Position numbers and translations under genes: made by a program. A DNA stretch of 64,000 bases from Phaeosaccion multiseriatum (Eukaryota; Protista; Ochrophyta, other classes): contig OZ218962.1 in NCBI GenBank assembly GCA_965112735.1, positions 1,922,001 to 1,986,000 on the forward strand, in the 5' to 3' direction. The notes under the pieces were generated by a model. That model made no database searches and was not told the DNA's origin. It worked only from the letters and a program-made list of their open reading frames with translations. Every line of letters begins with the position of its first letter. Position 1 is the stretch's first letter. This document shows positions 4,043 to 64,000 of the stretch, one piece after another.

Positions 4043-4095
<53 letters not shown>

Positions 4096-4207
4096 GTGTA
4101 TCTCGATAGGGTCACATACACTGAAAACGGAGGTGGGGTGGGGATGGAGAAGGATAGGATAACATGCCATGAGATGAGAATGAGTCGGAGCTGCGGTATA
4201 TGTATAA

Positions 4208-4258
<51 letters not shown>

Positions 4259-6801: not shown

Positions 6802-15398
<8,597 letters not shown>

Positions 15399-32818: not shown

Positions 32819-32860
<42 letters not shown>

Positions 32861-37286: not shown

Positions 37287-37317
<31 letters not shown>

Positions 37318-40300
37318 CACACATGTACACACACACCAGCAAACATTCGGCCGCTGCCTGCGCATGAAGAGCCTTCTCGGGGCGGCAATCTTCCGAGAGG
37401 GCGGTCACGGGCACCCAGGAGGAGAGAGAGTCACGAGCGCAGCCGGCCTCAAGGACGACAAAGTGAGCTCCAACCTCGACCGTGTGAGGTGTACGCTGAG
37501 GCTGCAGCAGGTGCTGTGGGAGCCGCTGAGAGAGGCCCACGCGATGGAGAGAGATTGGCACGGCACTGCGCTTTTCAGGCTCAATACAGCGCGCATGGAG
37601 GTGAGAGAGGGAGGGAGGGAGGGAGGGAGGGAGGGAGGGAAGGAGGGAGGGAGGGAGGGAGGGAGGGAAGGAGTCTTGTGTCTTGTGTCGTTTGTCTCGT
37701 CTCTTGTCTTGATTTATATATATATTATATACTAAAACAACATTCCCTCTTCTCCTCCCTCTCCTCCCCCTCGAAGGACCTCTCCTTTCGTGTCCGTACG
37801 CCATCTGTGATGTATGTATGACTAACCTCCTAACTCACCCAACATTTCGCCATCTGTGACCTTGTGATTTCCTGACTGAACCACCAACAGGCTCGGCTCG
37901 GGGAGGGACTCAAAATGCTCAGAGAAGCTCTTCGTGCCAACAGTGCCAGTGACGTCGTGCAGTTCTGCCGTTACAAAATGTCGAGCTGCAGCATCGAGCT
38001 CGACTTGGTCAAGCACCTTCATAACAAGGATCTCACGCCATCGTACTGGGCTCGCATCGAAGCCGCCATGCCCGCCATCTGTGAAAAAGTCGTGCCCGTC
38101 TATGACAGGGTAAGTAAGTCAGTTGTGTTTCTCCTCCTCCTCCTCCTCCTCCTCCTCCTCCTCCTCCTCCTCCTCCTCCTCCTCCTCCTCCTCCTCCTCC
38201 TCCTCCTCCTCCTCCTCCTCCTCCTCCTCCTCCTCCTCCTCCTCCTCCTCCTCCTCCTCCTCCTCCTCCTCCTCCTCCTCCTCCTCCTCCTCCTCCTCCT
38301 CCTCCTCCTCCTCCTCCTCCTCCTCCTCCTCCTCCTCCTCCTCCTCCTCCTCCTCCTCCTCCTCCTCCTCCTCCGCCTCCCCTTCCTCTTTCTACTTACT
38401 CTTCTGTATCACCAACTGCTTGGCTGCCTGCTGCTCTTGATACCCACGAGCAGATACCCACGGCTGAGATGGCCTTGGCCTTGGGAAGTCGGGACGGCAA
38501 GGGAGGCAGAAGGTTTGACTTTGAGCGTCATAACCGTCCACCAGCAGTTGGTGATATAGCTGGTGATGCAGTTGGTGATACATCAGCAGCAGCAACAGCG
38601 GTGATGGCGGCTGCAGGAGGAGAAGGAGGAACAGCTGCAGAAGGTGAAGTAGGAAGCAAAGCAGAGGACGACGAGAGGGGCAGGGGAGCCCCAGATGCCT
38701 CCTCCAACCAACCAGAGCAGCTAGTCGTACAACAACAACAACAACAGCAGCAGCAGCAACAACAACAACAACAAGGGGAGGCGCCAGCAGCAGTATCGAG
38801 CAGCAGTGCACCCCCCACCCTCATCCCCCCTGAGACAGGTCCTGCGTCACCCGTGCCCGTTGCTACTACCGTGTCTGCCCCACTCGGAGCTGATACGCCC
38901 CCCGGGGTTGGTGTCGTCGGTGTGGGTGCAGCGGTGCCAAAGGGTCGAAGCTATCGTCTTGAGGAGGCGGAGAGGGAAGCCCTCTCTCTCGAGCTGCCCA
39001 TGGGGGTGGCGTGGGGAGGGGTGCCGCTTCGAGCGCTGCTGGAGAACGGCCTTACACGCAGCAAAGACGTTATTCGCAAGGTGAGAGGGTAATTTCGTAC
39101 GCCAGTTGTGAGTGGTGGGTCGTTGGATCCGTGCGTGGGTGCATTGGTGGGTATGTGGGTGTGGGTGGGTGGGTGTGGGTGTGTAAAGGGATGTGTGCCC
39201 GGGTGGATGTGGTTGAGTAGGTGCAGGAGGGTATCCCTCTCCTTCCTTGCCCCAACCATGCCTTTCTCCCTTCTCCCTCCCTCCCTCCTTCCCTCCCTCC
39301 CTCCCTCCTCCCTCCCTCCCTCCCTCCCTCCCTCCCTCCCTCCCTCCCTCCCTCCCTCCCTCCCTCCCTCCCTCCCTCCCTCCCTCCCTCCCTCCCTTCC
39401 TCCCTACTTGCCCCTATATATACACCTCCATTCAACCAATCCTCCCTACTCCTGTCCGGCTGTAACACCAACCGGTCAAGGTGTCCATCGAAGCAACAAG
39501 CAGCGCTGTCCTCGTGCGCACCCTCAAGAGTCTCGAGGACGCGTGGGGAGGGGTGACGACTGCCCAGGGTGCGGCGGGGGGGCTTCTGAAGATGGGGTGG
39601 CGTGTGGAGGAGAAGGATGCCATCGCTCTCTCGCTGGTGGCCGAGGCTACACCGAGCAAGTGAGTCAGTCGGAAGGAGAGAGGGAGGGAGGAAGGGGAGC
39701 GACAATGTCATACTAGCAACCCACACACCCACACAACCACGCACCCACACCCCCCCAACCACCCACCCGTCCAGTACCCCATCCCCCCTCCCCCCCCCCC
39801 AATAAAGACCACCACACTCCCAATCCACTGCCATATCCCCCCTCTCATCCGATCCATCCACTGCCATATCCCCCCTCTCATCCGATCCATCCACTGCCAC
39901 CCCCACCCCCTCCCCCCATCCACTGCCATCCCAGCTCGGCGGAGAAAGCTCTAGAGAAGGCTCTGGAGGCCCAGCGGTACATCAACTTTTCGAGCACTGT
40001 AACGCTCAACAACGGCACTGGCACTGGCACTGGCACTGGCACTGGCAACGGTAACGGCGGTGGTGGTGGTGGTGGTAGCTCCTCAAGCTCGAGCAGCAGC
40101 ACCACCACCATGACACTGAACGGTGCCTCTTCCTACGTTAGGCTCTTGTCCAATGGAGAGGCACTGCTGAGAAGGCTGGAGCATAGCCAGGTATATGGGC
40201 GTGTGCGTAGGGCAGGGCAGGGCATGTTAGAGGCATGTAGGCATAGAAAATTCGAGGCATGTAGGCATGAACATAGAGGCATGTAGGCATGAAAATAGAG

Positions 40301-43300
40301 GCATGTAGTAGGCATGAAAATAGAGGCATGTAGGCATGACAATAGAGGCATGTAGTAGGCATGAAAATAAAGGCATGTAGGCATGAACATAGAGGCATGT
40401 AGGCATGAAAATAGAGGCATGTAGTAGGCATGAAAATAGAGGCATGTAGGCATGAAAATAGAGGCATGAAGTAGGCATGAAAATAGAGGCATGAAGTAGG
40501 CATGAAAATAGAGGCATGTAGGCATGAAAATAGAGGCACGTAGGCATGAAAAAATAGAGGCATGTAATTTCCCATGTGAGGGCATATGGGCAGGCAGGAA
40601 GGGCAAATTCGAAGGTGGAGGTGATGGCAGTGGATGGGAGGGTGGGGAAGGGGCTGACTGACTAACTGACTGACTGACTGACTGACTCACTGACTCCTCA
40701 TATGCCTCCATTTTATAAAACTCAAACTGAAACTCTTCCCCCCTCTCTTGGTCTTATCCTCGTGGCAGGTGGCCATCACTGCCGTGGTCAACGCGCCGGA
40801 GAGACTGCTGAGGGCCGTCAACATTCACAGACAGGCCCAGGACTGGCAGGTCAGTCCACTTAATTAATAGTCCAGGGGTGGGAGGGGGTGGGTGGGAGAA
40901 GTATGTCAATGGGTCGGCGAGTATAGTATGGCAGTAAGCGGGCTGATGCGGATGTCGTAAGTCAATGGTTGGGTTGGTGCGGGTGGGTGCGTGGGTGGGT
41001 GAGTGGGTGGATGCGTAGGTGGATGGGTGAGTGGCTTGTGCCTTCCTTCTCTACGCCGCTATCCAACGCTCCTCCCCCTCCCCGGGTCTCCCCCTCCCCC
41101 ATCCACTGCCATCCCCCCTTCATCCACTACCATCCACTGCCATCTACTGCCACCCCGTCTACTGTCATCCACTGCCATCCACTGCCATCCCCTCCCTCCC
41201 CCCTCGGACGGGTCAGGCCCGGCTGGAGTGGCTAGAAGCACTGCTGATGCAATGGTTGGCGGTGCAGCAGCTGTGGATGAGGGTCATGCCGGTGTTTATG
41301 AGCACTGAGGTAGCGAGGCACATTACTTCAGACTACAGGCGGTTTCAGGTAGGTTTTGGAAGGGCAAGGGGAGGGAGCAGGAGGGAAGGGAAGAGGAGGG
41401 GGAGGGGACGGGAGGGTGAGGGATGGGAGGAGAGGGAGGGGAGGGGAAGGGAGGGGAAGGGAGGGGGGGATGGGAGGTGAGGTGAGGGGAGGAGAGGAGA
41501 GGGGAGGGGAGGGGAGGGGAGGGAGGGGAGATCATGATATACGCAGGGCAACCAACCTTCTAAACACGACAACGTCGCGCACGCAAACACACACACAAAC
41601 ACGCACACACACACACACACACACGCACACACACACGCACACCACACGGCCTCACTCAGTCTCTCACAACTGCCATATCACCTACCCACCCACCCCTGTA
41701 TCACCAACAGGAGGTGAGCCGCCGCTTCAAGGACATGCTCAATGACCTTGATGCAGGGGGTGCTTCCCTCGTGACCATGCATCGAGCTCAACTCGACGGG
41801 TCCCAAAGCCTGTTGCCCAAGGCTGTGAAGCTCCGTCGCGATTTGGAGAGCGTGATTCGGGCCGTGCAGCGGTGGCTGGGCAGCAAGCGATCCCTGTGTC
41901 CGAGGCTGTTCGCCTTGTCTTCCCATGACATGTTTCGCTTGTTTCGTGACTGGACGACCCTGCATGTGCAAACGGGGAGAGCAGTGGGGGGTACGAATGA
42001 GCGAGTGGCCAAGATGTTTAAAGGTATGTGGTGAGGAGAGGGGATGGGGAAGGGGAAGGGAGGGGCGGGGAGGGGAGGGGAGGGGAGGCGCAAACCTCTC
42101 TTAACTGCCATCCTCTGCCCTCGCTCGCGGCCATCCGTTGCCATCCCCCCCCCCATTGCCATGCTGTCCATACGCTGCCATCCACTGCCATCCCCTTATT
42201 GCCATCCACTGCCATCCTCCTCCTCCTCCTCCTTCTCCTCTCCTCTCCGCTGCAGGGGTGGGGGAGGTCCTTTGGTGCCCCATCTCCGACGACGAACAGC
42301 TCCCCGAGGGGGGCAGAGAGGCCGCAGCAGCCGCTCCAGCAGTTAGTGATACAGGGGCAGCGGGAGGAGGAGGAGGAGGAGGAGGAGGAGGGGGCCCTCC
42401 GCCGATGCAGTGGACTTATGGTGTCGTGAGCGGAGGTGGAGGGTGAGTTGGGAGGGTGAGGGGGAGGGGGGGGGTGAGGGAGTGAGTGAGTGGGTGAGTG
42501 AGTGAGTGAGGGAGTGAGGGAGTGAGGGAGTGAGGGAGTGAGGGAGTGAGTGAGGGAGTGAATGAGTGAGTGAGTGTGTGAGTGTGTGAGTGAGGGAGTG
42601 AGGGAGTGAGGGAGTGAGGGAGTGAGGGAGTGGGTGAGTGAGGGAGTGAGTGAGGGAGTGAGTGAGTGAATGAGTGAGTGAGGGAGGGTATAAGGGAGGA
42701 AGGGAGGGAGGGAGCAGACTTTTGTCTCCTTTCTCCTCATCTCTTGATCGTGAGTAGCCTTGCAGTGTCCTATGCACTGGCCTCAATACCTTTCTACCCA
42801 CCCACCTACCCACCCACCTACCCACCCACCCACCTACCCACCCACCCACTCACCCACCCACCCACCTACCCACCCACCTACCCACCCACCCACTCACCCA
42901 CCCACTCACCCACCCACCCATCCACCCACTCACCCACCCACCCACCCACCCCACCCACCCCACCCATGCCGCCCACGCAGCTACGAGCGGCTGCTCTTCC
43001 CGGAGGAGAGTCAAATGACCACCCCCCCAACCCTGGAGGCGTGGGTCAGTAACCTCGAGAGAGGCCTCGCGTGCCGACTCATGCTGGACCTCCACACGGC
43101 GGTGGAGGAGATCGAGGCCAAAGAAGGCGCTCTCGCCATTCTCGTGACTTCGCAAGGGGCGGCGATGCAGGGAGGCGGGGTGATGGGTACACTGCTGGCG
43201 GCAGAGATGCGTGCCAAGTAAGTGCGGCAGTTGGTGATACGTGTGTGAAGTGGAAGGAGGAGGAGAAGGGCGGGCCTAGGAGGGGTGGGACTTGAAGCGT

Positions 43301-44943: not shown

Positions 44944-47900
44944 CCTCTCTTTCTCTCCCCCTCTCTCTCTCTGTCTCTCTCTCTCCCTCTCTCTCTCTCC
45001 CTCTCTCTCTCTCTCTCCCTCTCTCTCTCTCTCTCCCTTCCTTCCGTCCCTCACATGCGCAGTGAATGCCATGATGGGAGGGACGCGTTCGAATGGCAAC
45101 TTCATTTGCGTTACTATTACTCCCCTCCTCCCCACCGCCTGCTCCCCGGGGCGGAGAGACGAGCCAAAGCCAACGAAGCAACGCTCGACAGGCGTAACCG
45201 TGGGATCGCTGGCAGAGGGGGAGGAGCAGGAGGAGCAGGAGGAGCAGGGGGAAGAAGAAGAGGAGGAGGAGGAGGTGGAGGAGAAGGAGCCGAAGGAGGA
45301 GAAGGAGGAGGGGTGGATGCCTGCGGTGCTGGTCAGGCTTATCAGTCGTCTTCCGATCTGCAGTTCCTACAGCATGAGCGGATGGCAGTGGATGGACAGT
45401 GTGCGTCAGCCGTGCCCGTCTTGAGTGTCCACCTGGGTCCCTGGAGTGCGGCGTATGCGTTTGAGTATCAAGGCACAGTGGAGCGATTGTGGCTCACACC
45501 CCTCGCCGAGAGGTGTCTGGTGCATATGGTGAACTCAGCCAAGATGGTGAGAGGAGGGGGAGGGGAGGGGAGGGGAGGGGAGGGGAGGGGAGGAGAGGGG
45601 AGAGGAGGGGAGAGGAGGGGAGGGGAGGGGAGAGGAGGGGAGGGGAGGGGAGGGGAGTGGAGGGGAGGAGAGGGAGGGGAGGGGAGGGGAGGAGAGGGAG
45701 GGTGGAAGTATGTGGGTGGGTGGGTGAGTGAGTGCGTGAATGACTGCGTGAGTGACTTCCACTGCCACCCCTCACCTTGCCCTCCCCTTCTCTACCGCTC
45801 AGGCGAGTGGAGCGGGCCTCCTTCTCGCCCCTGAAGGCTCCGCCGGCGCCCCGGGAAGCTCCCAAGGTTTCTCCTCCGGCATGATGGCCTGCCATGACGT
45901 CGCAGTGGCATTCGGCCGGGGCTTGTATGCCCTCGCCGCTTCTTCTGTAACGTCACCTCAAGCCCTCAGTGCTCTCCTTGCCCACTCCCTTGCCTCTGGG
46001 GCGGTGACGGTGGTGACTAACGTAGACGCTTTGTCTCGCTTGACGCGCTCGGTGCTTGTGGAGTCGCTCAACGTGGTACGAAACGCCATTCGAGCGGAGC
46101 AACCAGAGGTAAGAGGGAGAGGAGGGGAGGGGAGGGAAGGTGGGGGGGGTGTACCCACCCATGTGTGTGTGAGTGTATGTGTCCCTATGTATGTATGTAT
46201 GTATGTATGTATGTATGTGTGCGTGCGTGTGTATCTGCGTGAGTGTGAATGTTTGGCGGTCTCTCGCTCCCTCACCACCCCCCCCCCCCCCCGCACCCTC
46301 TTTTCCCACCCACCCATTGACTTACTACCCATTCATTGCCTTACCACCACCCATTGACATACTCCGCAGGTGCTCGTGAACGGCTCAGCCCTTCAACTGG
46401 GAGGGTGCGGTACCCCCTGGAGAGAAAAGACCTTCGACTTCGTTCTGCATCAGTGGAGACTCCCTACACACGTCTCCAGGGGGGCGGCGCCGGAGGTACA
46501 TACGTAGTACTATATAGTACTTAAAATAATGTCGCGTCTACTTGAATGCATCTACTAGTGCTTAAGATACGCTTATCTAGTCTACTCTTTCTCATGCCCT
46601 CCCCCTCCCCCCTCCCCTCCCCTCCCCTCCCTCCCTTCCTCCCTCCCTCCCTCCCTCCCTCCCTCCCTCCCTCCCTCCCTCCCTCCCTCCCTCCCTCCCT
46701 CCCTCCCTCCCTCCCTCCCTCCCTCCCTCCCTCCCTCCCTCCCTCCCTCCCTCCCTCCCTCCCTCCCTCCCTCCCTCCCTCCCTCCCTCCCTCCCTCCCT
46801 CCCTCCCTCCCTCCCTCCCTCCCTCCCTCCCTCCCTCCCTCCCTCCCTCCCTCCCTCCCTCCCTCCCTCCCTCCCTCCCTCCCTCCCTCCCTCCCTCCCT
46901 CCCTCCCTCCCTCCCTCCCTCCCTCCCTCCCTCCCTCCCTCCCTCCCTCCCTCCCTCCCTCCCTCCCTCCCTCCCTCCCTCCCTCCCTCCCTCCCTCCCT
47001 CCCTCCCTCCTCCCTCCCTCCCTCCCTCCCTCCCTCCCTCCCTCCCTCCCTCCCTCCCTCCCTCCCTCCCTCCCTCCCTCCTTCCCTCCCTCCCTCCCTC
47101 CCTCTCACCCCCAGCGACACTACCCCCAGGCGCTGAACGGTCCCTTCGTGGGAGTGTATGGCATCCTGTCGCAGCCCCCCGCATTCCTCTTTCCGTCCGC
47201 TGCCATCTCCTCGTCGTGTGCCTCTTCCTCCTCCTCTCTCGCCGTGCCCCTCTCGCTCAGGCTCGTCTTCAGACCTGTACTGCTTGTGCCGCCGGACTCA
47301 CGCCTGGTACGTAACTTACGTAAGCTTCATTTCCGTACATATGCATCCTCACGTATCCTTCTTATTCTTGAGTATCACGAATGTATGGGCTTGTATGGGC
47401 TTGGTTTGGATGCCACTACATGATGAATCAATCACTTTGATTGTTGATGCTCAGATGCGATACATGTAGTATATATATACGGACTGGAAGTAAATATCCC
47501 CTCCCTTCCCCTCCCCTGCCCTCCCCCTCTCCTGCCCTCCCCTCCCGTCCCCTCCCCTCCCCTCCCCTCCCCTCCCCTCCCCTCCCCTCCCCTCCCCTCC
47601 CCTCCCCTCCCCTCCCCTCCCCTCCCCTCCCCTCCCCTCCCCTCCCCTCCCCTCCCCTCCCCTCCCCTCCCCTCCCCTCCCCTCCCCTCCCCTCCCCTCC
47701 CCTCCCCTCCCCTCCCCTCCCCTCCCCTCCCCTCCCCTCTCCTCTCCTCTCCTCCCCTCCCCTCCCCTCCCCTCCCCTCCCCTCCCCTCCCCTCCCCTCC
47801 CCTCCCCTCCCCTCCCCTCTCCTCTCCTCTCCTCCCCTCCCCTCCCCTCCCCTCCCCTCCCCTCCCCTCCCCTCCCCCATCCACTGCCACCCCAGCTCCT

Positions 47901-50066
47901 CCGTGCGATGCTCCTGACCTTCGGCTTCGCCACTGCCCTGGAGCTCGCTCCGTACGTCGAAGGGGCCATCAACGCGCTCCGAGGGGCGGAGCACTCCGAA
48001 GCCCTTCCTCTGCGCGTGCTCGGACCCCTTGATGACGTCACTGCGCTTTGGGTGCTGCTCCGAAGGGCGTGTCGCACGGCGAGTGAGAGCCTGTTTCTCG
48101 ACCGACACAGGTACGTACGTAAGGGATGACGTATGTAGTCATACTTTTTTTTTTTTTTTTGAAATGAATTAAAATGAATTAAAAATTGAAGCAGAGAAAC
48201 AGCATATGTGTATCGTATCTATTCTGTCCATAGGTGTTCGATTTGTTATTTCGATGTGTTCGATTTCTTGATCTTTTGTTGTTATGTTCGATTTTGTTGT
48301 GTGTCGATGGCATATATGCTGATGGGAAGTACTTTTGTATCGAGGTCCATCAGTCCATCTCACGAAAACTGAAACTGGAAACTTCGCCACCCAAACCACC
48401 CAAACTGAAACTCCGCTCCTTGTCAGGGGCCTTGCTGCGGCGGGTCGCAAGCTTGCCATGAACAACTTGCCTCGTGCTGAGAAGGCTGCCCTCGCCAACG
48501 TGAGTGAATGTGTATATATATATACATAATAATGTGTATAATAAGGAGGGGAGGGAAGAGCAGAAAAGCCTAATATGGCGTAACAGTTGTTTCCGTCGAG
48601 TGCCATCCAATTCACCTCGATTATTCATCAGATGATCGCTTACCCAACTGTTGTACCGCCAACTGCTGCTGTACCACACACATACACACACACACACGCA
48701 CACACACACACACACACACACCACACACACACACTCACACACACACACACACACATACACACACACACACACACACACTCACACACACACACACACACAC
48801 ACATACACACCCAACAGACGGTGTGCCTGGCCATCGAATCCCGAAACATGATGCGAGGACTCCTCCTTGCTCTTGAGGACAGAGGCGTCAAGGAAATGTC
48901 AGGTCTCGAAGGCATAAGGAGGGGACAGCAGAGCGAGGGGAGGGGCGGGGACGAATGGGCTACCCAGGAGGGACGGCAGCGAACCGCCACCCTCAACCTC
49001 CTCTTCGCGACCTTTGCAGAGCCCATGCAGACGCTTGAGAGACTCACCTCGGGCAAGAGTCTGTCGCAGCTGGAGGTGGGTGGCGTGTTGGTGATACAAG
49101 GGGTGGGGTGGGATGGTGGGGTGGTGTGGGGTGGTGTGGGGTGGTGTGGGGTAGGGTAGTCCTCTGTCCTGACACCCACACACCCCACCCTCTGCCCTGA
49201 CACCCACCCCCCCCCCCCTCCCTGTGTCCTGTCCTGACACCCTGCACCACCCACAGATGCTTGGGCTCGTGTCCTCGAAGAAATCGTCGTCCACTCGCGC
49301 CAAGCAAGAGGTGGGTGATATCACAGATGACAGCGCAGTGCAGCAGAGGTGATGCAGCACCATACACTGCAGCAGTTCGTCATCCCTTCCTCCCTCCCTC
49401 CCTCCCTCCATCCCTCCCTCCCTCCCTCCCTCCCTCCCTCCCTCCCTCCCTCCCTCCCTCCCTCCCTCCCTCCCTCCCTCCCTCCCTCCCTCCCTCCCTC
49501 CCTCCCTCCCTCCCTCCCTCCCTCCCTCCCTCCCTCCCTCCCTCCCTCCCTCCCTCCCTCCCTCCCTCCCTCCCTCCCTCCCTCCCCCTCCCCCCCCCTG
49601 TATCACCAACAGGTTACCGCCATGGTGCACAAAGCCATCGCCGCCGCCGGAGTAGCGCCCACAACGGCACAAGTCAAGGCCGGGGAGGCCGTGTGGGACT
49701 CCTTATGGGGGTGTCGTTCCTCTTGCGTCATCCTTGTGGGGCCATCGGGCAGTGGCAAGACAGCGGTCTTGCAGGGGATGCCACAGTTGGCCAACTACGT
49801 GGATTACAACTTTGCAAGAAGACTGGCCAAGACCGTGCAGAAGATTCGGGGTAAAGCACGGAGGAGAAAGATGCTCGACAGCAATGGCGGTGAGTGGGGG
49901 TGGGTGGGTGCGTGCGTGCATTGGGCGGGGTGGGGTGGGAGTGAGGGAGAGACCGACTGACTGACTGACTGACTGACTGATAGATTGACTGATTGACTGA
50001 CTGATTGACTGACTGACTGACTGACTGACTGACTGACTGACTGACTGACTGACTGACTGACTGACT

Positions 50067-50098
<32 letters not shown>

Positions 50099-53006
50099 GA
50101 CTGACTGACTGACTGACTGACTGACTGACTGACTGACTGACTGACTGACTGACTGACTGACTGACTGACTGACTGACTGACTGACTGACTGACTGACTGA
50201 CTGACTGACTGACTGACTGACTGACTGACTGACTGACTGACTGACTGACTGACTGACTGACTGACTGACTGACTGACTGACTGACTGACTGACTGACTGA
50301 CTGACTGACTGACTGACTGACTGACTGACTGACTGACTGACTGACTGACTGACTGACTGACTGACTGACTGACTGACTGACTGACTGACTGACTGACTGA
50401 CTGACTGACTGACTGACTGACTGACTGACTGACTGACTGACTGACTGACTGACTGACTGACTGACTGACTGACTGACTGACTGACTGACTGACTGACTGA
50501 CTGACTGACTGACTGACTGACTGACTGACTGACTGACTGACTGACTGACTGACTGACTGACTGACTGACTGACTGACTGACTGACTGACTGACTGACTGA
50601 CTGACTGACTGACTGACTGACTGACTGACTGACTGACTGACTGACTGACTGACTGACTGACTGACTGACTGACTGACTGACTGACTGACTGACTGACTGA
50701 CTGACTGACTGACTGACTGACTGACTGACTGACTGACTGACTGACTGACTGACTGACTGACTGACTGACTGACTGACTGACTGACTGACTGACTGACTGA
50801 CTGACTGACTGACTGACTGACTGACTGACTGACTGACTGACTGACTGACTGACTGACTGACTGACTGACTGACTGACTGACTGACTGACTGACTGACTGA
50901 CTGACTGACTGACTGACTGACTGACTGACTGACTGACTGACTGACTGACTGACTGACTGACTGACTGACTGACTGACTGACTGACTGACTGACTGACTGA
51001 CTGACTGACTGACTGACTGACTGACTGACTGACTGACTGACTGACTGACTGACTGACTGACTGACTGACTGACTGACTGACTGACTGACTGACTGACTGA
51101 CTGACTGACTGACTGACTGACTGACTGACTGACTGACTGACTGACTGACTGACTGACTGACTGACTGACTGACTGACTGACTGACTGACTGACTGACTGA
51201 CTGACTGACTGACTGACTGACTGACTGACTGACTGACTGACTGACTGACTGACTGACTGACTGATTGACTGACTGACTGATTGACTGACTGACCGACTGA
51301 CTGACTGACTGACTGACTGACTGACTGACTGACTGACTGGCTGGCTGGTTGACTGACTCACTGTCTCACTGACTGACTGACGGACTGATTGACTGACTGA
51401 CTGACTAGCTGACTGACTGTCTGACTGACGAGCGGACCGACTGACTGACTGACGAGCGGACCGACTGACCGATTGACTGACCGACAGATCGACCGACGGA
51501 CCAGCAAACCAACACACTCACTCACTCACTCACTCACTCACTCACTCACTCACTCACTCACTCACTCACTCACTCACTCACTCACTCACTCACTCACTCA
51601 CTCACTCACTCACTCACTCACTCACTCACTCACTCACTCACTCACTCACTCACTCACTTACTCACTCACTCACGCATTCATTCATTCACCCCAGCACGAC
51701 TGACTCACTCGCTAACAACGCCTCCTCCCCCCCCTTCCCTCCCCTCCTCCTCTCCTCACTCTCTAGAGCAAGCCAAGGCCGCCTCCAACGAGAGGGGCTC
51801 TGTGGGTCTGCGCTACCTCGCTAACCGCAGTGTTGGCTTTAGAGAGTTCGCCGCACATTGCGCCCGCTTCAAGGCACGTGGATATGGCTGACGGACTCAC
51901 TCACTGACCGACTCAGTCAGTCAGTCAGTCAGTCAGTCAGTCAGTCAGTCACTCACTCACTCACTCACTCACTCACTCACTCACTCACTCACTCACTCAC
52001 TCACCACTCACTCACTCACTCACTCACTCCCTCACTTCCTCAAACTCCCTCACCCACTCACTTAATCCCTCCCTTCCTTCCTCACTCACTCACTCTTCGC
52101 CTTCTCTCCTCCCCCCCCCCCCCCTCCATCCCTTTCCCCTCCCCTGCCCTTGAAAAGGTGGAGAAGAAGAGCATCTCCACAACTGGCACTGTATTCACAA
52201 CCGGCACATCAGGCTCCTTCGGTACCAAGGGCTCCGCAGCAGGGTCCAGGGGCTCACGGGGCTCAGGGTCGAGGGCAGGCAGTAGAGACGGGGGAGGGGG
52301 GGCGTCTGTGGCGGCGAGTCAAACGAGCAAGAGCAGTAAGGCGTCACGTAACAGTAGGAGCAGGTGAGAGAGAAGGAATGGGTGCGTAGTATGTCAATGG
52401 GTGCGTGAGGGGGTGCGTGAGTGGGTGCGTGGGTGTATATATATTATATATATTATATATATTATATATATGTGGTGGGGTGGGATGGCAGTGGGCGAGT
52501 TGTCACGCCTTCGCGTGCTTTAACTTTCCCCATCTCTTGTCTCTTTCTCCTTCCCTCTCTGTCCCTCCTCGCCCCCCCCCTCGCCTCACCTCTGTCAACC
52601 CCCCTCCTCCTCTTCAACTCCGCCCTTCCTCCTCTCTTCATCTCCCCTCCCCCTCCCCCTCCCCCTCCTCTGTCCACCCCCAACACATATAGTGTGGTGG
52701 CGCTGGCTGCCCGAGAGCTGCAAATGCCCCAAGCGATGGTCATGAATGACTTCGTTGTACCCGCAATGAGTATAGAGACCGTCTTGCCAGGTGTGTGAGG
52801 GCATGGCAGTGGATGGCAGTGGATGGGAGTGGGTGGGTAGAGTAGTGCGTGGGGGTGGGGTGGATCGGCCGTGTGCGTGGAAGAGAGTGGGTGGATGGCA
52901 GTGGATGGCAGGTAGGAGATGGCAGCCGATGGATGGACGGATAGATGGATGGGCAGGGGATGGCAGTGGATGGCGCCTCTGAGGGAAGGGTACACTAGCC
53001 ACTTGG

Positions 53007-53079
<73 letters not shown>

Positions 53080-53643
53080 TCTGCGTATGCGTGTGTGGTC
53101 GTGCGTGTGTGGTCGTGCGTGTGTGGTCGTGCGTGTGTGCGTGTGTGTGTGGGTGTGTGTGTGTGCGTGTGTGTGTATATGTGCGTGTGGGTGGTGTGTG
53201 TATGTGCGTGTGGGTGTGTGAGTGTGGGTGAGTGTATGTGTGTGCGTGTGTGTGTGGGTGGGTGTGAGTGTATGTGTGTGCGTGTGTGTGTGCGTGTGTG
53301 TGTACATGATCCTCAAGCTTAGCCCTTCCGCCATCCTCACTCCATCCTGAAATCAAGGCCAACAAACACAAACTGAAATCAAAGCCAACACGCGCAAACT
53401 CTACCTACACTCAAGCTGTCACTGTCTCTCCCGTGCTGATCACTCTGCCTTCTCCTATCCTCCTCCGCCCCTATTCCCCCTCCTATCCTCCTCCTCCTCC
53501 TTCTCCTCCTCCTCCTCCTCCTCCTCCTCCTCCTCCTCCTCCTCCTCCTCCTCCTCCTCCTCCTCCTCCTCCTCCTCCTCCTCCTCCTCCTCCTCCTCCT
53601 CCTCCTCCTCCTCCTCCTCCTCCTCCTCCTCCTCCTCCTCCTC

Positions 53644-53675
<32 letters not shown>

Positions 53676-56600
53676 ACCCAGGCGCTTGTGCCCCCTCCTT
53701 CCTACTGGGCTCGACTGACGAGCACGGGGATTGGTGTGATGGGCTGTTGCTGAGGAGGCTGAGGATGCTCGCCAGCGGGAGGGGCGATCGATACTCCGTT
53801 GGAGAGGTAAGTAATGGCAGGGGTTGGCAGTGGAGGGATGGCAGGGGATGGCAGTGGATGGCATAGGATGGGGCGAGCGGAAACGGGCGGGGGACGTAAG
53901 GAGGGAGGGAGGGAGGGAGGGAGGGAGTGAGGAGGGAGGGAGGAGGGAGTGAGGAGGGAGTGAGGAGGGAGGGAGGAGGGAGGGAGGAGGGAGGGGGTGG
54001 ATGAAGTGCATGGAGTGGATGGAGTGAGGGAGGAGGGAGGGAGTGGATGGAGTGGATGGAGTGGAGCGTAAAAGTTGTATGTATGTGTGTGTGTGTGTGT
54101 GTTTGTTTGTGTGTGTGTGTGTATGTATGTGTGTGTGTGTGTGTGTTTGTGTGTGTGTGTATGTGTGTGTTTGTGTGTGTTGTGTGTGTGTTGTGTGCGC
54201 GTGCGTGCGTATGTGTGTGTGTGTGTGTGTGTCTAACCCCTTCACCCCCACTCCCTAACCCCCTCCATCCCCTCCTACCTCAATACAGACGGGCAAGGGT
54301 GATGCTCTCCGACCCGTACTGTCCCCCGAGGAGGCAAGCCTGCACACAGAGGGGCTCATGGAGGGAGCACAGGCGGGCCTGTCGGTTTCCGGGTCGGCTG
54401 TGGCTGCCGGCAGTAAGGAGGGGGGCGGGGGGGGAGGGGGAGCAGGCGGGGATTGGGGGGCAGGGGGGATGGAGGGGATGCAGAGCTGCTCGGAGGGGGT
54501 GCTTGGCGACTATCGCTCTCGACTGCTCGTGTTGGACGGCTACCTTACCCGGGATATCGAGGCCATACTGGTAAGGCGGGGGGTGGTACAGAGACAGAAG
54601 GGGGGAATGAAAGGACAGTCACATTCACGCGGATGAGCCTGACGCACACACACACACTCACACCAAGCGATACATGGCGTAGTGTTACGTAATGCTACGT
54701 ACTGTTACCTACTGTTACGCAATGTTACGTAATGTTACGTAATATTACCTACTCTACCTCCTAGCGATCTTACCTTTTGGCATAAGAAGCCGTAACGAAT
54801 GTGATACTGACCCCCTCTCCCCCCCCCCCCCCCCCACTGCCATCCACTACCATCCCCTCAGGCAAGTGACGTTTCCTCCGTCCCCACCCTCACCGGCCCG
54901 GAGAAGGGGGCGTGGGATGCTCGCAAGCTTCTCCTCCCCGACGGAGACTGCCTTGCCCTTGATGGGAGGGCACATGTGGCGGTGGAAACCGTCGACATTA
55001 GCGACTTGTCCCCGGCCACGCTTACTCTTACTACGGTCGTGCATCTGGATGTGAGTGCGTGCGTGTGTGTGTTTGTGTGTGTGTGTGTGTGTGCGTGTGT
55101 GTGTGCGTGCGTGTGTGGGCTTGGGGGCGGGCGGAGGGAATGATTGTGGAAGGGACACATGTACTAGTGATGGGGGCTCAGCTCAGCTCAACTCCCCCCT
55201 AAAGCCTCACTCGCCTCCCCTTGTATCCTTCCCCCATCCATCCACTGCCATCCCTCCATCGACTGCCATCCACTGCCATCCCAAAGGTGTCCACTCGCGA
55301 GATGGTGGGTTGCATGGTGGATGCTTGGCTGCGAAAGCTAAGAAGGGGCAAGATGACGTCACTGCCCGGGGGGGTCAACTTTACCCCTACAGTGCAAGCC
55401 GCCATCAAGGAGGTAAGCAAAGAGGAGGAGGAGGAGGAGAAGGAGCAGGAGCAGAACAAAAAGGGGAGAAGGAGGAGGAGCAGAACAAAAAGGGGAAGAG
55501 GAAGCCTCTCCTTCACGAAGAGCTGAAGGTCCCCGAACACCCCTCTCCCCCACCCCACCCACATACCCACTCACACCCACCCACCCAATCACCCACCCAC
55601 CCACCCACCCACTCAAACGCACACACACATACTTCCATTTGCACACACAATCCCACTCACTCACCCATCCACCCACCACCCATCCGCTCACTCACACTCC
55701 CTCACTCCCTCACTCACACTCCCTCACTCACTCTCTCGCCTACTCACTCACGCACTTACTCACGCACTCACTCACGCACTCACTCACTCACTTACTCACT
55801 CACTCACTCACTCACTCACTCGCTCACTCACTCACTCACTCACCCACCCACCCACCCACCCACCCACTCACTCACTCACTCACTCACTCACTCACCCACT
55901 CCCTCACTCACTCACTCACTCACTCTCTCGCCTGCTCACTCACGCACTCACTCACGCACTCACTCACTCACTCACTCACTCACTCACTCACTCACTCACT
56001 CACTCACCCACTCACTCACTCACTCACTCACTCATTCACTCACTCACTCATTCACTCACTCACTCACTCACTCACTTACTCACTCACTCACTCACTCACT
56101 CACTCACTCCCTCACTCACCCACCCACCCATCCACCCACACACACCCACCACCCATGTACCCACTCACACCCACCCATCCATTAGGCGCTGACCGTGGAC
56201 GACTTGGTCCTCAACATCGTTGGCTTCGAGGTCGGCAGAAGCACCAGTGGTAGTAGGGGGAGTAGCAGCAGCAGCAGCAGCAGTGGCGGCAGCACTAGCG
56301 CGGGTGTTATCTCCGGCAGCGGCGGTGGGGACAACAGCAGCAGCACCAACAGTGGGGTGGGGGTGGAGGAAGGAGGAGGGGGGGTGAGTGGCAGCTCCTA
56401 CAGCATCAACGTTGATGTGGTGCCTGCTGTCGCCTCGTCTCGCGTCATGGCCATGCTGCGCTTACTGGAGTGTTTGCTTGGGTGGCTCGTGGAGGAGGAT
56501 GAGTACGCCACCGCCCCAGATGCCATCGTAGAGGTGAGTAGTAGTAGAAGTAGTAGTAGTAGTAGTAGGTAGTAGTAGCAGTAGTAGGAGGAGTAGGAGT

Positions 56601-58413: not shown

Positions 58414-61400
58414 GGTGAGTGGATGGATGGATGGCAGTGGATGGATGGATGGCAGTGGATGGGAGTGCCATAGATACATGGGAACAGGAAGGAAGAAGGA
58501 AGGAAGAAAGGAAAGAGGCAAAGAAGGAAGGAAGGACGGAGCGAAGGAATGAATTAAAGAATGAAGGAAGGAAGGAGGGAAAAAAGGAAGGAAGGAAGGA
58601 AGGAAGGACGGAGGAAAAGAATGAATGAAGGAAGGAGGAAAAGAATGAATGAAGGGAGGAGGGAAAGAAGGAAGGAGGGAAGGAAAGATAGAATTGATGG
58701 AAGGAAGGAAGGAAGGAAGGAAGGAAGGAAGAAAGGAGAAAGGAAGGAAATTGCTTATTTGTTGCCCGTTGCCTTGCTCCGAAACACGCACACACACACA
58801 CACACGTTGGTGATACACACAACAGGCCGCGTGACGCTGAGCACGTTTATGAAGCAGCGCATGCCCAAAGACGTACAGCATGACGTCATCTTCGAGGCGA
58901 ATCTCTACAACTTCATACCCGATTTAGTCTCGGTGAGTAAGAGGGGAAGTTATTGACATATAGGAATCAACATAAGAATTACGTATGTATTTACGTATGT
59001 ACGGGTATGAGTTGCGGGGTTTTGATGGTTCATGAGAGACCTAAGGCCACTGTTACTGCTCACCCTGCTTCCACCCCCCCTCCCTCCCCTCGCTCATCCG
59101 CTGCCATCCACCCTCCCATTCACTGCCATCCACTGCCATCCACCCTCCCATCCTGGTCAGGGCAAGCTGGTGCCCATCAGCGGCTACGATGGAGTGTTCG
59201 GTGTTCCCAAGGGGGCTTGGCAGAACGTCCCTTTCTGGCACGTGGGCGCCTCTGAATTGGGTCAGTCCATGCCTCCCTCACTCGTCGTGCCCACCGTCAG
59301 GACACGATCCATCTTGACGGCCGTGTATATAATGGTACGTAAGGTTGCGTGTGTGTGTGTGTGTGTGCGTGTACGTGTACGTGTATGTGTATGTGTATGT
59401 GTGTGTGTGTGTGTTGTGATGTGGTGTGCAAATCAGTCTGCCCTCGCAAACACACACACACACACACACTTCTCTCCCTTATACGTATTGCCTCGTTGCG
59501 TTTCCTTACTTACGTACCCGTCATGTTATGTTTTGACCCCTTAACCCCTCGCGTATACGTACTGGCTCAGCTCGGTCGTGCTCGCATGCACGTGGTGCTG
59601 GAGGGAGAAGAAGGGGTTGGTAAGACGGCCCTCGCAAGGAGGCTTCTCAAGGCCTTGGGGGACGGCGTGCCGGACCCTTTCGCAATCTCTCTGGAGGGCG
59701 AGAGTCAGCAGGTGGGAGGGGAAGGGCGGAAGGGCAGAGGGTGGGAGGGAGGGATAGAGTCAGGGTCAGGGGGAGGGTAAGGGTAAGGAGGAGGAGGAGG
59801 AGGAGGAGGAGGAGGAGGAGGAGGAGGAGGAGGAGGAGGAGGAGGAGGAGGAGGAGGAGGAGGAGGAGGAGGAGGAGGAGAGGAGGAGGAGGAGGAGGAG
59901 GAGGAGGAGGACGAGGAGGAGGAGGAGGAGGAGGAGGAGGAGGAGGAGGAGGAGGAGGAGGAGGAGGAGGAGGAGGAGGAGGAGGAGGAGGAGGAGGAGG
60001 AGGAGGAGGAGGAGGAGGAGGAGGAGGAGGAGGAGGAGGAGGAGGAGGAGGAGGAGGAGGAGGAGGAGGAGGAGGAGGAGGAGGAGGAGGAGGAACAGAA
60101 TCAGAGTGAGGAGCGGCGAGACTATCATGTTTATCGATATTAAATATCGAGATCGATAGCGGCATGGACGAATCCTCAGGGGGAGGGGGAGGACATCAGT
60201 GGCCTGACTGCTTCAATGACTCACTGACTGACTGACTGACTGACTCACTGACTGACTCACTGACCCGCGTACTTGCCTGCCTCTGCGCCTGCCTGACTGA
60301 CTAACGTATTCGAATGTATTTCGATACGAATATCGGCACCGACATTCTGACTGATTCTCACAGGTTGAGGCCACAAGTGGCCTCACGCAACGCATGGAGG
60401 CCGGCGGGGTGGACTCGGGAGGCGACGCAGTTGGAAGCATACAGGTAGGGGCGCGGAGAGAACTGAGTGTCAGGTGTCGAGTGTCAGGCTTTACGCCTTT
60501 ATCTGCCGCCCATCCACTACCATCCGCTGCCATGCCCTGACAAAATCCCTAGGTGAGCACTTCGATCGCCATGGTGGACGAGCTGCGCCAGGAGGTGGTT
60601 CACAGCGTCGCCAGAGCTGAGGATGGCAGTGGATGTGCCCAACCGCAACCAGCAACCGCAGGATTAGCAGGCCGAGACGCACCAGCAGGAGCAGCAGGGG
60701 CACCAGGGGCAGCAGGGGCAGCAGGGGGTGAAACCGTCAATGAGCACCACCAACAGCAGCAGTCGCAGGAGTCGCAGCAGTCGCAGCAGCGTATACCGCC
60801 CCTGAGCTCTGTATATGTGTCTCTGTCCCGATCGAGCCGGCCGGAGCACGTCATCGAAACGATAGAGGGGGCTCTTCTTGGAGAGAGGAGAGGCACCCTG
60901 AGGGCCCCTACGGGTGGGCGTGTCGTTGTATTTGTTGATGACTTACACCTCGCTGCAGGAGGAGGAGGAGGAGGAGGAGGAGGAGGAGGAGGAGGAGGAG
61001 GAGGAGGAGGAGGAGAAGGAGGAGGAGGAGGAGGAGGAGGAGGAGAAGGAGAAGAAGGAGGAGGAGGAGGAATGGGCGGCGCCGTGCGGGCCGAGATGCA
61101 GCTCGTGGAACTTCTACGTGGAGCAGTGGGGTACTCTGCGGCGGTGAGCATCGTACCTATCTCAGCCCATGCAGTAGCTGAAGGTGGAGGAGCAGGTGGT
61201 GGTGGCGGAGGAGGAGGAGGAGGAGGAGGAGGAGGAGGAGGAGGAGGAGGAGGAGGAGGAGGAGGAGGAGGAGGAAGTGGCGGGGTTGGTGGTTCGGGTG
61301 CACTGATGATGGAAACGCCTGGCGACTGCCGACTCATCGCTCCAAACAGAGACATGCGACTCGCCCGAGAGAGAGACGCACGGAGGTTGAAGCTTGCCAA

Positions 61401-64000
61401 ACTTGCGGAGAAGAAGACACACCACAAGGGGAACATCGGCGGTGGGGGGGGGGGGGGGGTGGAGGCCCGACAGGAAGGAGGAGGAGGAGGAGGGGGAGGA
61501 GGAGGAGGAGGAGGAGGAGGAGGAGGAGGAGGAGGAGGAGCTGGGTCCCGGCCTCAAACCGCAGAGGTCACTGATTGGACGGCTGGAATTGGAGGGGGAG
61601 GAGCAGGAGGATCAGGACGAGGAGGAGTAGCAGCAGCATCAGCCGCAGCAGCCGCAGGAGGAGGAGGAGGAGGAGGAGGAGGAGGAGGAGGAGCAGGAGC
61701 AACGCCTGTGCCTTTATCTCTACACGGAGAGCCGCTCTCTTGCTTGCCCGAGGCGAGTGCCATGGGTGCGCTTCCCAAGAGAATGCAAGTCTTGCCGGAC
61801 TTTGTTCGCAGCGAGGGCTTGGGCGCAACGGGTGATTGCTACCGGCCGCTGCCGGGTATGACATACCTCGCTGCTGGCCGCCCTCGGGTGGCAAGGTTAG
61901 GGGTGGGAGGAGGAGGAGGAGGAGGGGGGGGTGGAGGTGGTGGTGGCGGGCAGCAGTTGGTGATACGGCAGTCGATGCAGGATCGCCTCTATCGCCCCTT
62001 CGCGCTGCTCAACATGGCCTCACCTGAGGACAGCGAAATGAGGGGAATCTTCACGCCTCTTTTCCAGCACGCCTTCAGCGCCGATGGGGCCGCCTACGAG
62101 GTGAGAGGGGTATATATATATATATAATATGTATATATTACTTCGAAGTATATATTATATATACAGGGGGGGGTAATCAGAGAGGGTCACATATGCCTCC
62201 TTTACCCCATTCACATTGTTTCGCATTCCGCACTGTCTTCATCTACACCTTGCCGTCAGCAGATTGGGTTTTCTTCCCAAATCTACTGTCCTTGATCCCT
62301 TTTGTGACTCTTCTACTTCCCTTCCCCTCCCCCCTTTAGGTGCTACGTGGCAAGCATCTTGATGCCGTAGTCTTCTCTCACGAGGTTGTGCAGGCCTCAC
62401 GCTCTCTCGCACACCTCACAGTGGACCTCCTACGCAGATGCGTCGGACATGCAAAGCACGCCTTCTCACGCTACGCGGACCACCCTCACCCTCATCCTCG
62501 CGCTGCGGCTACAAGCAGTCGTCGTCTTCCTTCTCTCTTTGCTGTCGAGAATGGCAATTTCTGCTTCGGCTCTTCACAAATGGCGGCATCGCTGCTGCAG
62601 TTCAACATGCCAACCCTTATGCGCTTCCTGCAGGTGAGCGCATGGCGTATGCCTCCAACCTGTCTCCTCGTATGCCTCCAATCTGTCTCCTCGTGTTCCT
62701 CTAATCTGTCTCCTCGTGTGCCTCCAATCTCTCTCCTCGTATGCCTCCAATCTGTCTCCTCGTGTGCCTCTAATCTGTCTCCTCGTGTGCCTCCAATCTC
62801 TCTCCTCGTATGCCTCTAATCTCTCCTTTCCTGCCCATATGCCTGTCTGAAGGTGTTCACTGTTCTGCAGCCGGAGTTCGTGCCGACCCCTCTGTCACTC
62901 GCCAGACTTTGGTGCCATGAGGTGCGCTGGTTGGTGTATAGCGTGCTCACTCACTCACTCACTCACTCACTCACTCACTCAATCCCTCACTCACTCACTC
63001 ACTCACTCACTCACTCACTCACTCACTCACTCACTCACTCACTCACTCACTCACTCACTCACTCACTCACTCACTCACTCACTTACTCACTCACTCACTC
63101 ACTCACTCACTCACTCACTCACTCACTCACTCACTCACTCACTCACTCACGCACTCACTCGCTCACTCACTCACTCACTCACTCACTCACTCACTCACGC
63201 ACTCACTCACGCACTCACGCACGCACTCACTCACGCACTCACTCACTCACTCACTCACTCACTCACTCACTCACTCACTCACTCACTCACTCACTCACTC
63301 GCTCACTCACTCACTCACTCACTCACTCACTCACTCACTCACGCACTCACGCACTCACGCACTCACTCACTCACTCGCTCACTCACTCACTCACTCACTC
63401 ACTCACTCACTCACTCACTCACTCACTCACTCACTCACTCACTCACTCACTCACTCACTCACTCACTCACTCACTCACTCACTCACGCACTCACGCACTC
63501 ACTCACTCACTCACTCACTCACTCACTCACTCACTCACTCACTCACTCACTCACTCACTCACTCACTCACGCACTCACTCACTCACTCACTCACTCACTC
63601 ACTCACTCACTCGCTCACACTTCACTCACTCACTCACTCACTCACTCACTCACTCACTCACTCACTCACTCACTCACTCACTCACTCACTCACTCACTCA
63701 CTCACTCGCTCACTCACTGCCTTGACACCCACTCGCTAACCCACCCTCTCTCTCCCTTCCTTCCTCCCTCCCCCTCTCCCTCCCTCCTCCCCCACCCCCC
63801 CCTTCCCTCCCCTCCCTCCGTATCACCAAAAGGTCATGAAAGAGTTCGTGGATCCTCTCGGCCAAGTGTCGCGTGTGTACCAGAGCGCCGCCATGGCCGA
63901 TCTCATCGACACCATCGCAAAGAACAGCACCGCCCTACACCTCGGCGTCCATGAGGAAAAAAAGCTGATCCAATCTCTGCGATCGAGTAGCCGCACCGCA
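23059..64000 (+). CDS. Very large, highly divergent axonemal (single-headed, DNAH6/DNHD1-like) dynein heavy chain; 3'-partial, ~54 exons in window
   Basis: Manual exons: 23059-23727, 24020-24563, 24829-25747, 26156-26322, 26655-26721, 26891-27146, 27398-27874, 28173-29798, 30576-30844, 31783-32762, 33691-34034, 34304-34510, 35453-35560, 35891-37045, 37340-37600, 37891-38109, 38454-39080, 39481-39659, 39935-40190, 40769-40849, 41217-41348, 41711-42023, 42256-42442, 42981-43217, 43413-43508, 43723-43810, 44325-44743, 45063-45546, 45803-46108, 46370-46495, 47130-47306, 47896-48110, 48427-48499, 48818-49075, 49257-49310, 49613-49889, 51767-51873, 52158-52363, 52693-52790, 53682-53806, 54289-54570, 54862-55050, 55287-55412, 56186-56533, 57212-57521 (apparent 1-nt shift in poly-G), 58094-58157, 58826-58932, 59161-59334, 59571-59711, 60364-60444, 60553-62100, 62340-62633, 62853-62921, 63833->64000. 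Dynein landmarks appear in the correct order: NPYDLVIV and [21 protein letters not shown] (DNAH6-type N-terminus); [15 protein letters not shown] and [16 protein letters not shown] (DHC_N2 linker); [12 protein letters not shown]; [11 protein letters not shown]; [18 protein letters not shown] (AAA1); [12 protein letters not shown]; GPSGSGKT (AAA2); W.DGLL; LLVLDG; LVVPTVRT; GEEGVGKT (AAA3); VVFVDDL; LARLWCHE. Confidence 0.88.
25957..26080. repeat. 26-bp intronic minisatellite (CTGCTGCCCCTCTTCCTCTCCTCCAC) x~4-5
   Basis: Direct inspection. Confidence 0.85.
30237..30560. repeat. (CCT)n intronic microsatellite
   Basis: Near-pure triplet run ending just before the acceptor at 30575. Confidence 0.95.
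30853..31352. repeat. (CCT)n intronic microsatellite (~500 bp)
   Basis: Near-pure triplet run. Confidence 0.95.
34748..35443. repeat. (CCCT)n intronic microsatellite (~700 bp)
   Basis: Tetranucleotide run abutting the acceptor at 35452. Similar runs at ~31448-31715, 39275-39400, 46630-47101 and 49388-49590. Confidence 0.95.
40221..40565. repeat. ~22-25 bp intronic minisatellite (AATAGAGGCATGTAGGCATGAA variants)
   Basis: Tandem degenerate copies with no unique spacers. Confidence 0.9.
44025..44312. repeat. Degenerate GCCCATAT/GCCCGTAT/GCCT minisatellite in an intron
   Basis: Direct inspection. Confidence 0.85.
47500..47877. repeat. (CCCCT)n intronic microsatellite
   Basis: Pentanucleotide run before the acceptor at 47895. 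Confidence 0.95.
49955..51480. repeat. (GACT)n intronic microsatellite, ~1.5 kb
   Basis: Long near-pure tetranucleotide array in the largest dynein intron (49890-51766), followed by (CACT)n at 51516-51670. Confidence 0.97.
57759..58090. repeat. (CCT)n intronic microsatellite
   Basis: Triplet run up to the acceptor at 58093. Similar runs at 38131-38373 and 53486-53666; (GGA)n at 59787-60093. Confidence 0.95.
62647..62825. repeat. 23-bp intronic minisatellite (TGCCTCCAATCTGTCTCCTCGTG) x~7-8
   Basis: Fills nearly the whole 62634-62852 intron. Confidence 0.88.
62947..63717. repeat. (CACT)n intronic microsatellite
   Basis: Long tetranucleotide run. Similar runs at 12452-12586, 35605-35838 and 55690-56120. 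Confidence 0.95.

Follow-up and report, generated by a model that had tools for sequence, protein, structure and literature searches.

Non-motile dynein heavy chains have been taken seriously only recently, with the linking of DNHD1 to male infertility and the discovery of DNAHX by cryo-electron microscopy in 2025, and both of these proteins are from animals. DNHD1 is needed for sperm flagella, and its AAA1 module is without catalytic Walker B residues (10.1101/2025.01.18.633724; PMC9916431). DNAHX, described from the sea urchin (XP_041462850), is a non-motile dynein heavy chain that is locked in the pre-powerstroke state, heterodimerises with an active heavy chain, and has been proposed to inhibit and ferry dyneins (10.1101/2025.01.18.633724). 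In a wider survey, Kollmar described 17 dynein classes and 75 orphans, with class 11 (DNHD1) given as metazoan-only and classes 14–16 as oomycete-only (PMC5100056). Here we describe a dynein-like gene in a 64,000-nucleotide stretch of the genome of the ochrophyte Phaeosaccion multiseriatum (assembly GCA_965112735.1, contig OZ218962.1, positions 1,922,001 to 1,986,000). This whole stretch is referred to below as the window; positions are counted from its first letter, and features are on its + strand unless indicated otherwise. The window contains the N-terminal two thirds of an intact, intron-rich and very divergent dynein heavy chain gene, comprising the tail, the linker and the AAA1, AAA2 and AAA3 modules. 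AAA1 is still found at its usual position, with a conserved core, but it is without every element used for ATP binding and hydrolysis. A literature search found no description of a stramenopile dynein with a dead AAA1.

A sequence-only reading of the window had claimed a dynein heavy chain at 45450–55050 with a destroyed AAA1 site and intact AAA2 and AAA3 P-loops. The peptides that it quoted, among them YAFEYQG (45454–45474) and TPLAERC (45496–45516) near the start of AAA1, are all where it placed them on the + strand, and a MAFFT alignment with six canonical dyneins (DNAH7, DNAH1, DNAH3, a Hondaea inner-arm dynein and two others) agrees with the claim. At Walker A, the canonical APEGPAG-TGKTETTKD is represented in the window by APEGSAG followed by APGSSQGFS and SGMMACHD (45827–45898), with both Lys and Thr changed to Met and a 9-residue insert. 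Walker B, canonically CFDEFNR, reads VVTNVDA (46010–46030), with DE changed to TN. At sensor I the canonical ITMN is replaced by GILS, part of GILSQP (47160–47177), with Asn changed to Ser, and sensor II (GMRA) has no counterpart in the window AAA1 in this alignment. The arginine finger that AAA2 provides for AAA1 is also gone: the canonical ASPATVSRCG corresponds to ATLTLTT, within SPATLTLTT (55009–55035), and Arg is replaced by Leu (codon CTT, 55027–55029). AAA2 itself keeps a GPSGSGKT P-loop (49739–49762) and a canonical-type LVLDG, and to judge by these motifs it looks like the canonical ATP-binding, non-hydrolysing site. AAA3 keeps GEEGVGKT (59604–59627) and VVFVDDL (60925–60945), the axonemal form of Walker B. 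The segment from the exon that starts AAA1 (exon A, below) to the exon with the AAA2 P-loop contains no other P-loop-like motif in any + frame. A P-loop-like string at 43751 was considered as the AAA1 Walker A and was ruled out by its position upstream of exon A.

The AAA1 module and the start of AAA2 are described by an 8-exon model covering 45400–49849, with 1539 nt of coding sequence, zero stops and consistent phases. All 7 introns are of the GT..AG type. Exon A (45400–45546; 5' end undefined) starts AAA1 and is 52–65% identical to the family of relatives described below. Exon B (45803–46108; 42–58% identity to the family) forms the AAA1 core and carries the former Walker A and Walker B, and exon C (46370–46495) is a conserved block specific to the family. 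Strands beta4–beta5 of AAA1 are encoded by exon D (47130–47306), which includes the former sensor I and a conserved ten-residue stretch at 47268–47297. The small-domain region follows in exon E (47896–48110), where GMRA is not recognisable; this exon ends in phase 2, and its split codon, the only one in the model, is correctly completed across the intron by exon F (48427–48499), which matches the family block RELRAARRKLGLASLTSSERKEK. Exon G (48818–49075) is collinear with the family blocks AVEARVLIAGF... and RRAVMVSTFQ..., and the AAA2 Walker A exon (49613–49849; 34–43% identity to the family), which contains GPSGSGKT, gives P-loop matches in Pfam. Along the gene, chains of tblastn matches to the family proteins pick out 26 or more conserved blocks in the same order between 28176 and 62924, exon B among them, without stops or frameshifts across the blocks. 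An open frame, stated in the sequence-only reading for some 53 introns, was followed across the seven introns of the 8-exon model and across these blocks.

An exhaustive HMMER search with the linker exon gave six proteins: P0003, P0001 and P0004–P0006, which match the family, plus P0002. P0003 is a 5005-residue protein of the brown alga Discosporangium, and a second search added relatives in Cladosiphon and in Ectocarpus species, with CAM9401133.1 as the orthologue in Ectocarpus fasciculatus; a metagenome scan with the family alignment gave no confirmed relatives. The brown-algal proteins are collinear with the window and are 42–49% identical to it in exon B. All of them are without the Walker A Lys and the arginine finger, all keep the P-loops of AAA2 and AAA3, and AAA1 is conserved in the family to the same extent as AAA2 and AAA3. 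The metagenome protein P0001 led to the contig L001 and then to L004 and L005, which have a G+C content of about 40%, are almost intron-free and carry the same gene, again with a dead AAA1 and no arginine finger but with the P-loops of AAA2 and AAA3. In L001, the end of the linker, the dead AAA1 and the P-loop of AAA2 are all contained in a single uninterrupted open reading frame (ORF), and the region is likewise uninterrupted in L004 and L005. The L001 motifs AFGRG, LTSPQAVS and VDSLSSLTRAVLAESL are near those of the window, and exon B is 57.6% identical. Because the dead AAA1 lies in one continuous ORF in these intron-poor contigs, hidden exons that would restore the motifs are argued against. 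As far as the aligned proteins tell, a dead AAA1 combined with kept AAA2 and AAA3 P-loops is a family trait, old and conserved, in at least three deep lineages.

Some further observations were made on the relatives. The contigs L001, L004 and L005 come from a eukaryote in the Joint Genome Institute samples 3300081568 and 3300081709, and the orthologue in them adjoins a Frag1-domain gene; prokaryotic-style gene calling broke it into 5–8 ORFs at what appear to be a few short introns. In the EukProt protein P0011 (7958 residues), the tail and AAA1–AAA2 blocks match the window twice in order, at about 127–1515 and about 3917–5185, and the explanation is either tandem duplication or a fusion of gene models.

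Single exons of the window are too divergent to be recognised individually, and therefore the dynein homology is visible only via the family. Exon A matches positions 1–30 of Pfam AAA_6 with E = 0.0017, below the curated cut-off, exon B alone has no match in Pfam or the PDB, and the linker exon alone matches PDB dyneins weakly (E about 0.8). Of the dynein profiles with which the sequence-only reading had suggested a comparison, P0003 matches DHC_N2 (3.6e-25) and AAA_7 (2e-10). P0003 also matches AAA_9 and the start of AAA_6, and DHC_N2 is found in the matching part of P0001 (8e-21). A profile of the family AAA1 matches AAA1 of PDB dyneins at both flanks (E = 3e-11), namely at Y.FEY.G..RL..TPL..RC and ..F.T...........LP..L...FRPV....P, and the family profile aligns the exon D block to ...FITMNPGYAGR.ELPDNLKALFRPV.M.PD of the PDB dyneins. 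A PDB search with the P0003 tail gave no class-specific match. The protein has the linker upstream of the AAA ring, AAA1 in the right place and AAA2 and AAA3 in order, as is characteristic of the dynein superfamily; it lacks the catalytic AAA1 of the superfamily (Walker A, the Walker B DE, the sensor I Asn and the AAA2 arginine finger).

Selection was measured as the ratio of nonsynonymous to synonymous substitution rates (dN/dS) by the Nei–Gojobori method among the relatives L001, L004 and L005. The ratio is 0.15–0.19 for the whole ORF, 0.13–0.20 for the AAA1 large domain, 0.06–0.125 for the core that separates the former Walker A from the former Walker B, and 0.19–0.64 for the former P-loop segment. 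These regional values in the three contigs indicate that the AAA1 fold is under purifying selection, whereas the loop that formerly held the phosphates is relaxed. The earlier description of the gene as selected is thereby borne out indirectly, through collinear orthologues in at least three deep lineages, intact frames and the dN/dS of AAA1 in the relatives. Signs of constraint in the window gene itself are its intact frames, its splice sites and the block-wise conservation. Logan contigs from four runs of one sample reproduce exon B with zero differences; these contigs represent DNA and not RNA, since intron flanks are present and there are no joints. Protein fragments from Ectocarpus in Logan were considered as evidence of transcription and dropped, as they map to single long genomic exons and are uninformative on splicing.

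The stalk with its microtubule-binding domain, AAA5, AAA6 and the C-terminus would lie outside the window, and in the relatives the AAA_9 matches are weak. An AlphaFold2 model of the putative stalk region of the L004 relative contains long helices at 241–363 and 609–720 around a helical bundle, with two disordered inserts. The mean predicted local distance difference test score (pLDDT) of this model is 44, and the helices reach 73–90. In a Foldseek search with the model, the top 50 of 50 matches were dynein heavy chains, including the isolated stalk 5ayh, at borderline E values (best 1.3e-3). The model suggests that a stalk is probably retained and that the microtubule-binding domain is perhaps altered.

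The phylogenetic position was assessed with a maximum-likelihood tree covering the linker through AAA3 (17 rows, 1430 columns; redundant canonical matches omitted), built without cytoplasmic, outer-arm, DNHD1, DNAHX and class 10–17 sequences. The window sequence groups with L004 and the brown algae in one clade, with a value of 100 in the Shimodaira–Hasegawa-like approximate likelihood ratio test (SH-aLRT), with the window outside the brown algae. A branch of 5.4 changes per site lies between this clade and the inner-arm dyneins. In this tree the family does not group within the DNAH7-like class IAD3, falling outside the clade of DNAH7, DNAH3 and Hondaea (SH-aLRT 100 on each side), and its AAA1 is inactive. 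The tree shows only that the family is one very divergent clade; its origin cannot be read from the tree. Ranked by score, the canonical matches at the top are axonemal (DNAH7 with 6e-11, I1-alpha, DNAH1 and DNAH3), that is, inner-arm dyneins and I1-alpha and not outer-arm alpha, and cytoplasmic dyneins do not lead. Having brown algae as nearest relatives fits a stramenopile alga.

In dyneins, ATP turnover at AAA1 drives the power stroke of the linker. From this established mechanism we infer that a protein without AAA1 turnover would have no linker power stroke and would not be a motor. We consider it likely that the gene encodes a dynein heavy chain that is conserved in a non-motor role and serves as a static scaffold or regulator shaped like a dynein. 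The kept linker, canonical-looking AAA2, AAA3 site and probable stalk could form a rigid dynein-shaped body able to bind microtubules or other dyneins, and nucleotide at AAA2 and AAA3 could serve in structural or switch roles. Such a protein would be associated with microtubules or the axoneme, and it may pair with an active dynein, as has been suggested for DNAHX.

Several other explanations have to be weighed against a non-motor heavy chain. The loss of the AAA1 motifs, the abundance of low-complexity insertions and the finding of DNA-type runs only for this organism would all suit a decaying pseudogene, a functionless "ghost" of a dynein gene. We regard this as very improbable, as at least 26 blocks are free of stops and frameshifts, the seven tested introns are canonical and phase-consistent, the architecture is shared with the brown algae and an unrelated low-GC lineage, dN/dS in the relatives is 0.06–0.2, and AAA1 is conserved as well as AAA2 and AAA3. 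It is also conceivable that the dead site only results from a wrong selection of exons and that the true transcripts use exons that restore the motifs, a refutation envisaged in the sequence-only reading itself. The exons were indeed inferred without RNA, and the introns are long and rich in repeats. However, none of the + frames offers an alternative P-loop-coding stretch in the segment from exon A to the AAA2 exon, the chosen exons are collinear with the relatives at 42–58% identity, and the uninterrupted ORF of L001, L004 and L005 carries the same degenerate motifs. This ORF argues, in place of RNA, against such exons, and we give an artefact of this kind hardly any credence.

A different possibility is that the protein is a re-wired motor, in which ATP turnover at AAA3 or another site drives a conformational cycle. 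AAA3 has intact Walker A and Walker B motifs that the family conserves, and the linker and a predicted stalk-like hairpin are kept, but we know of no dynein that moves without AAA1 hydrolysis. Moreover, the DD form of the AAA3 site is that of axonemal dyneins and offers no novel catalytic arrangement, and the AAA4 finger for AAA3 lies beyond the window; a re-wired motor is, in our view, improbable. The family could also represent DNHD1 (class 11) in stramenopiles, as the orthologue of the animal protein, or fall into the oomycete classes 14–16, in which case it would belong to an old, classified class and would not represent an independent loss of AAA1. In overall character it does resemble DNHD1, which is very divergent, has disordered insertions and a non-conserved AAA1 (10.1101/2025.01.18.633724), and classes 14–16 are stramenopile dyneins (PMC5100056). 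The reported restriction of class 11 to metazoans and of classes 14–16 to oomycetes (PMC5100056) makes this assignment unlikely, and the HMMER search with the linker exon points the same way, with five of the six proteins matching the family, the six being unscreened for animal or oomycete origin. At slightly less than even odds, in our view, the family belongs to an unclassified class of stramenopile-algal dyneins that would have lost nucleotide binding at AAA1 altogether, independently of DNHD1 and DNAHX, which would make it a third, older origin of a pseudo-motor. The range of this putative class would so far comprise the brown algae, the present alga and the low-GC environmental lineage, and an Ectocarpus orphan may be among the 75 orphans of Kollmar. 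Its members would keep the linker, the AAA2 and AAA3 nucleotide sites and a stalk, and in heterokont flagella they might serve as static tethers, or as partners that inhibit or transport active dyneins, a role that we put forward with the same reserve.

Some points weigh against the interpretation as a conserved non-motor heavy chain. Selection was measured in the relatives and not in the gene of the window, the runs found for this organism are all of the DNA type without spliced joints, and the C-terminal third of the gene lies outside the window. A conserved Asp occurs three residues past the canonical Walker B position (VDAL, VDEL or VDSL in the family), and because of it a residual metal or nucleotide contact at AAA1 may be possible. 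An AlphaFold2 model of AAA1–AAA2 of P0003, made from a 13-row alignment, was poor (mean pLDDT 46) and its result was left unused; a Foldseek search with this model gave no significant match, the best being AAA1–3 of dynein-1 with E = 0.089. The sole hint of a putative axonemal localisation comes from the canonical sequences nearest to the family, which are axonemal inner-arm dyneins.

The gene as a whole is far larger than the span of the original claim, starting at 28176 or earlier and ending beyond 64000. The N-terminal tail (28176–38073) consists of blocks at 28176–28322, 28770–28937, 32576–32764, 33885–34031, 35894–36109, 36803–37021 and 37927–38073, found by collinear tblastn matches with P0003, P0009 and P0010. 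It is followed by the DHC_N2-type linker exons (40128–42019: 40128–40235, 41214–41351 and 41711–42019), which are 38–45% identical to family members by tblastn, and by the end-of-linker motif (canonical W.SQLRYYW) at 45088–45120. Downstream of the 8-exon model, AAA2 continues at 53675–54573 with tblastn blocks at 53675–53824 (..DWCDGLL.., canonical EW.DG) and 54484–54573 (RLLVLDG.., canonical Walker B IVFDG), compared with the canonical motifs by eye, and then with the exon at 54862–55050, the site of the arginine finger for AAA1, which is 54–56% identical to the family. AAA3 is represented at 59164–59711 by blocks at 59164–59334 and 59553–59711, the latter including its Walker A, and its Walker B region (60799–62088) consists of a block at 60799–60954 that includes VVFVDDL, a Gly-rich in-frame insertion and a conserved block at 61759–62088. 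The insertion (60955–61758) amounts to about 270 Gly-rich low-complexity codons within a stop-free stretch at 60553–62124, and is probably a coding insertion in the AAA3 module. Insertions in the relatives differ from it in position.

The DNA of the window is eukaryotic and GC-rich (about 58%), with short exons and GT..AG introns packed with microsatellites. The seven introns in 45547–49612 are polarised: their first 120 nt are G-rich, with a GC skew of 0 to +1.0 (one exception at −0.41), and their last 120 nt are C-rich, with a skew of −0.2 to −0.96 (one exception at +0.22). Both ends of these introns are made of microsatellites (GGGGA, CCCT, CA). An identical 14-mer, TGTATCACCAACAG, closes three introns (41697–41710, 49599–49612, and 24243 on the minus strand), and a fourth intron closes with CCCAACAG (48810–48817). 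The sequences just upstream of TGTATCACCAACAG are unrelated between introns, which suggests a conserved 3' splice or branch signal and not copies of one element. Upstream of the dynein-like gene, the + strand has ORFs at 6993–9986 (998 codons) and 13086–15395 (770 codons) that look ankyrin-repeat-like from their translations, the latter with a BTB-like C-terminal part.

The closest canonical relatives with which the family can be compared are the single-headed inner-arm dyneins of IAD3/IAD4 (DNAH7, DNAH1, DNAH3), which give the best canonical matches for the linker and the AAA1 flanks. Like the window family, they have VFVDD, the axonemal type of Walker B, in AAA3, and their AAA1 lies about as far from the N-terminus. 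In the AAA1 module, however, the identity is about 27% (192 aligned residues), and the window family has lost every catalytic motif of AAA1. The orphans and classes 14–16 of Kollmar are comparable as divergent, taxon-restricted bona fide heavy chains, some of them stramenopile (PMC5100056). DNHD1 likewise departs strongly from a typical heavy chain, in that it has disordered insertions and its AAA1 is without catalytic Walker B residues, and it is nevertheless functional; the parallel drawn in the sequence-only reading is apt as an analogy. Unlike the window family, DNHD1 is reported to be metazoan-specific (PMC5100056), and the two were compared by description only.

DNAHX resembles the window family in being an over-long heavy chain with many insertions and a non-conserved AAA1, in keeping the ring and stalk architecture, and in its proposed role as a non-motor partner or regulator of active dyneins. 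The state of AAA1 is different, as DNAHX keeps the P-loop and Walker B and holds ATP in AAA1 (with Thr to Val in Walker A and Arg to Lys in sensor II), whereas in the window family the P-loop is interrupted and without Lys and the arginine finger is gone. DNAHX is also reported only in animals and derives from outer-arm alpha, while the window family is stramenopile-algal and its nearest canonical sequences are inner-arm dyneins. A stramenopile-algal family in which AAA1 is more thoroughly erased would make the change from dynein to non-motor protein a recurrent, selected outcome. It would also provide a natural experiment on which parts of the ring are required after the power stroke is lost, the candidates being the AAA1 core fold, nucleotide binding at AAA2 and AAA3, the linker and the stalk. 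Ectocarpus and other brown algae produce flagellated gametes, and genetic tools exist for them, which makes the role of the orthologue directly testable there. Non-motor dynein heavy chains are already known from DNHD1 and DNAHX; a variant with a dead AAA1 in stramenopile algae is new.

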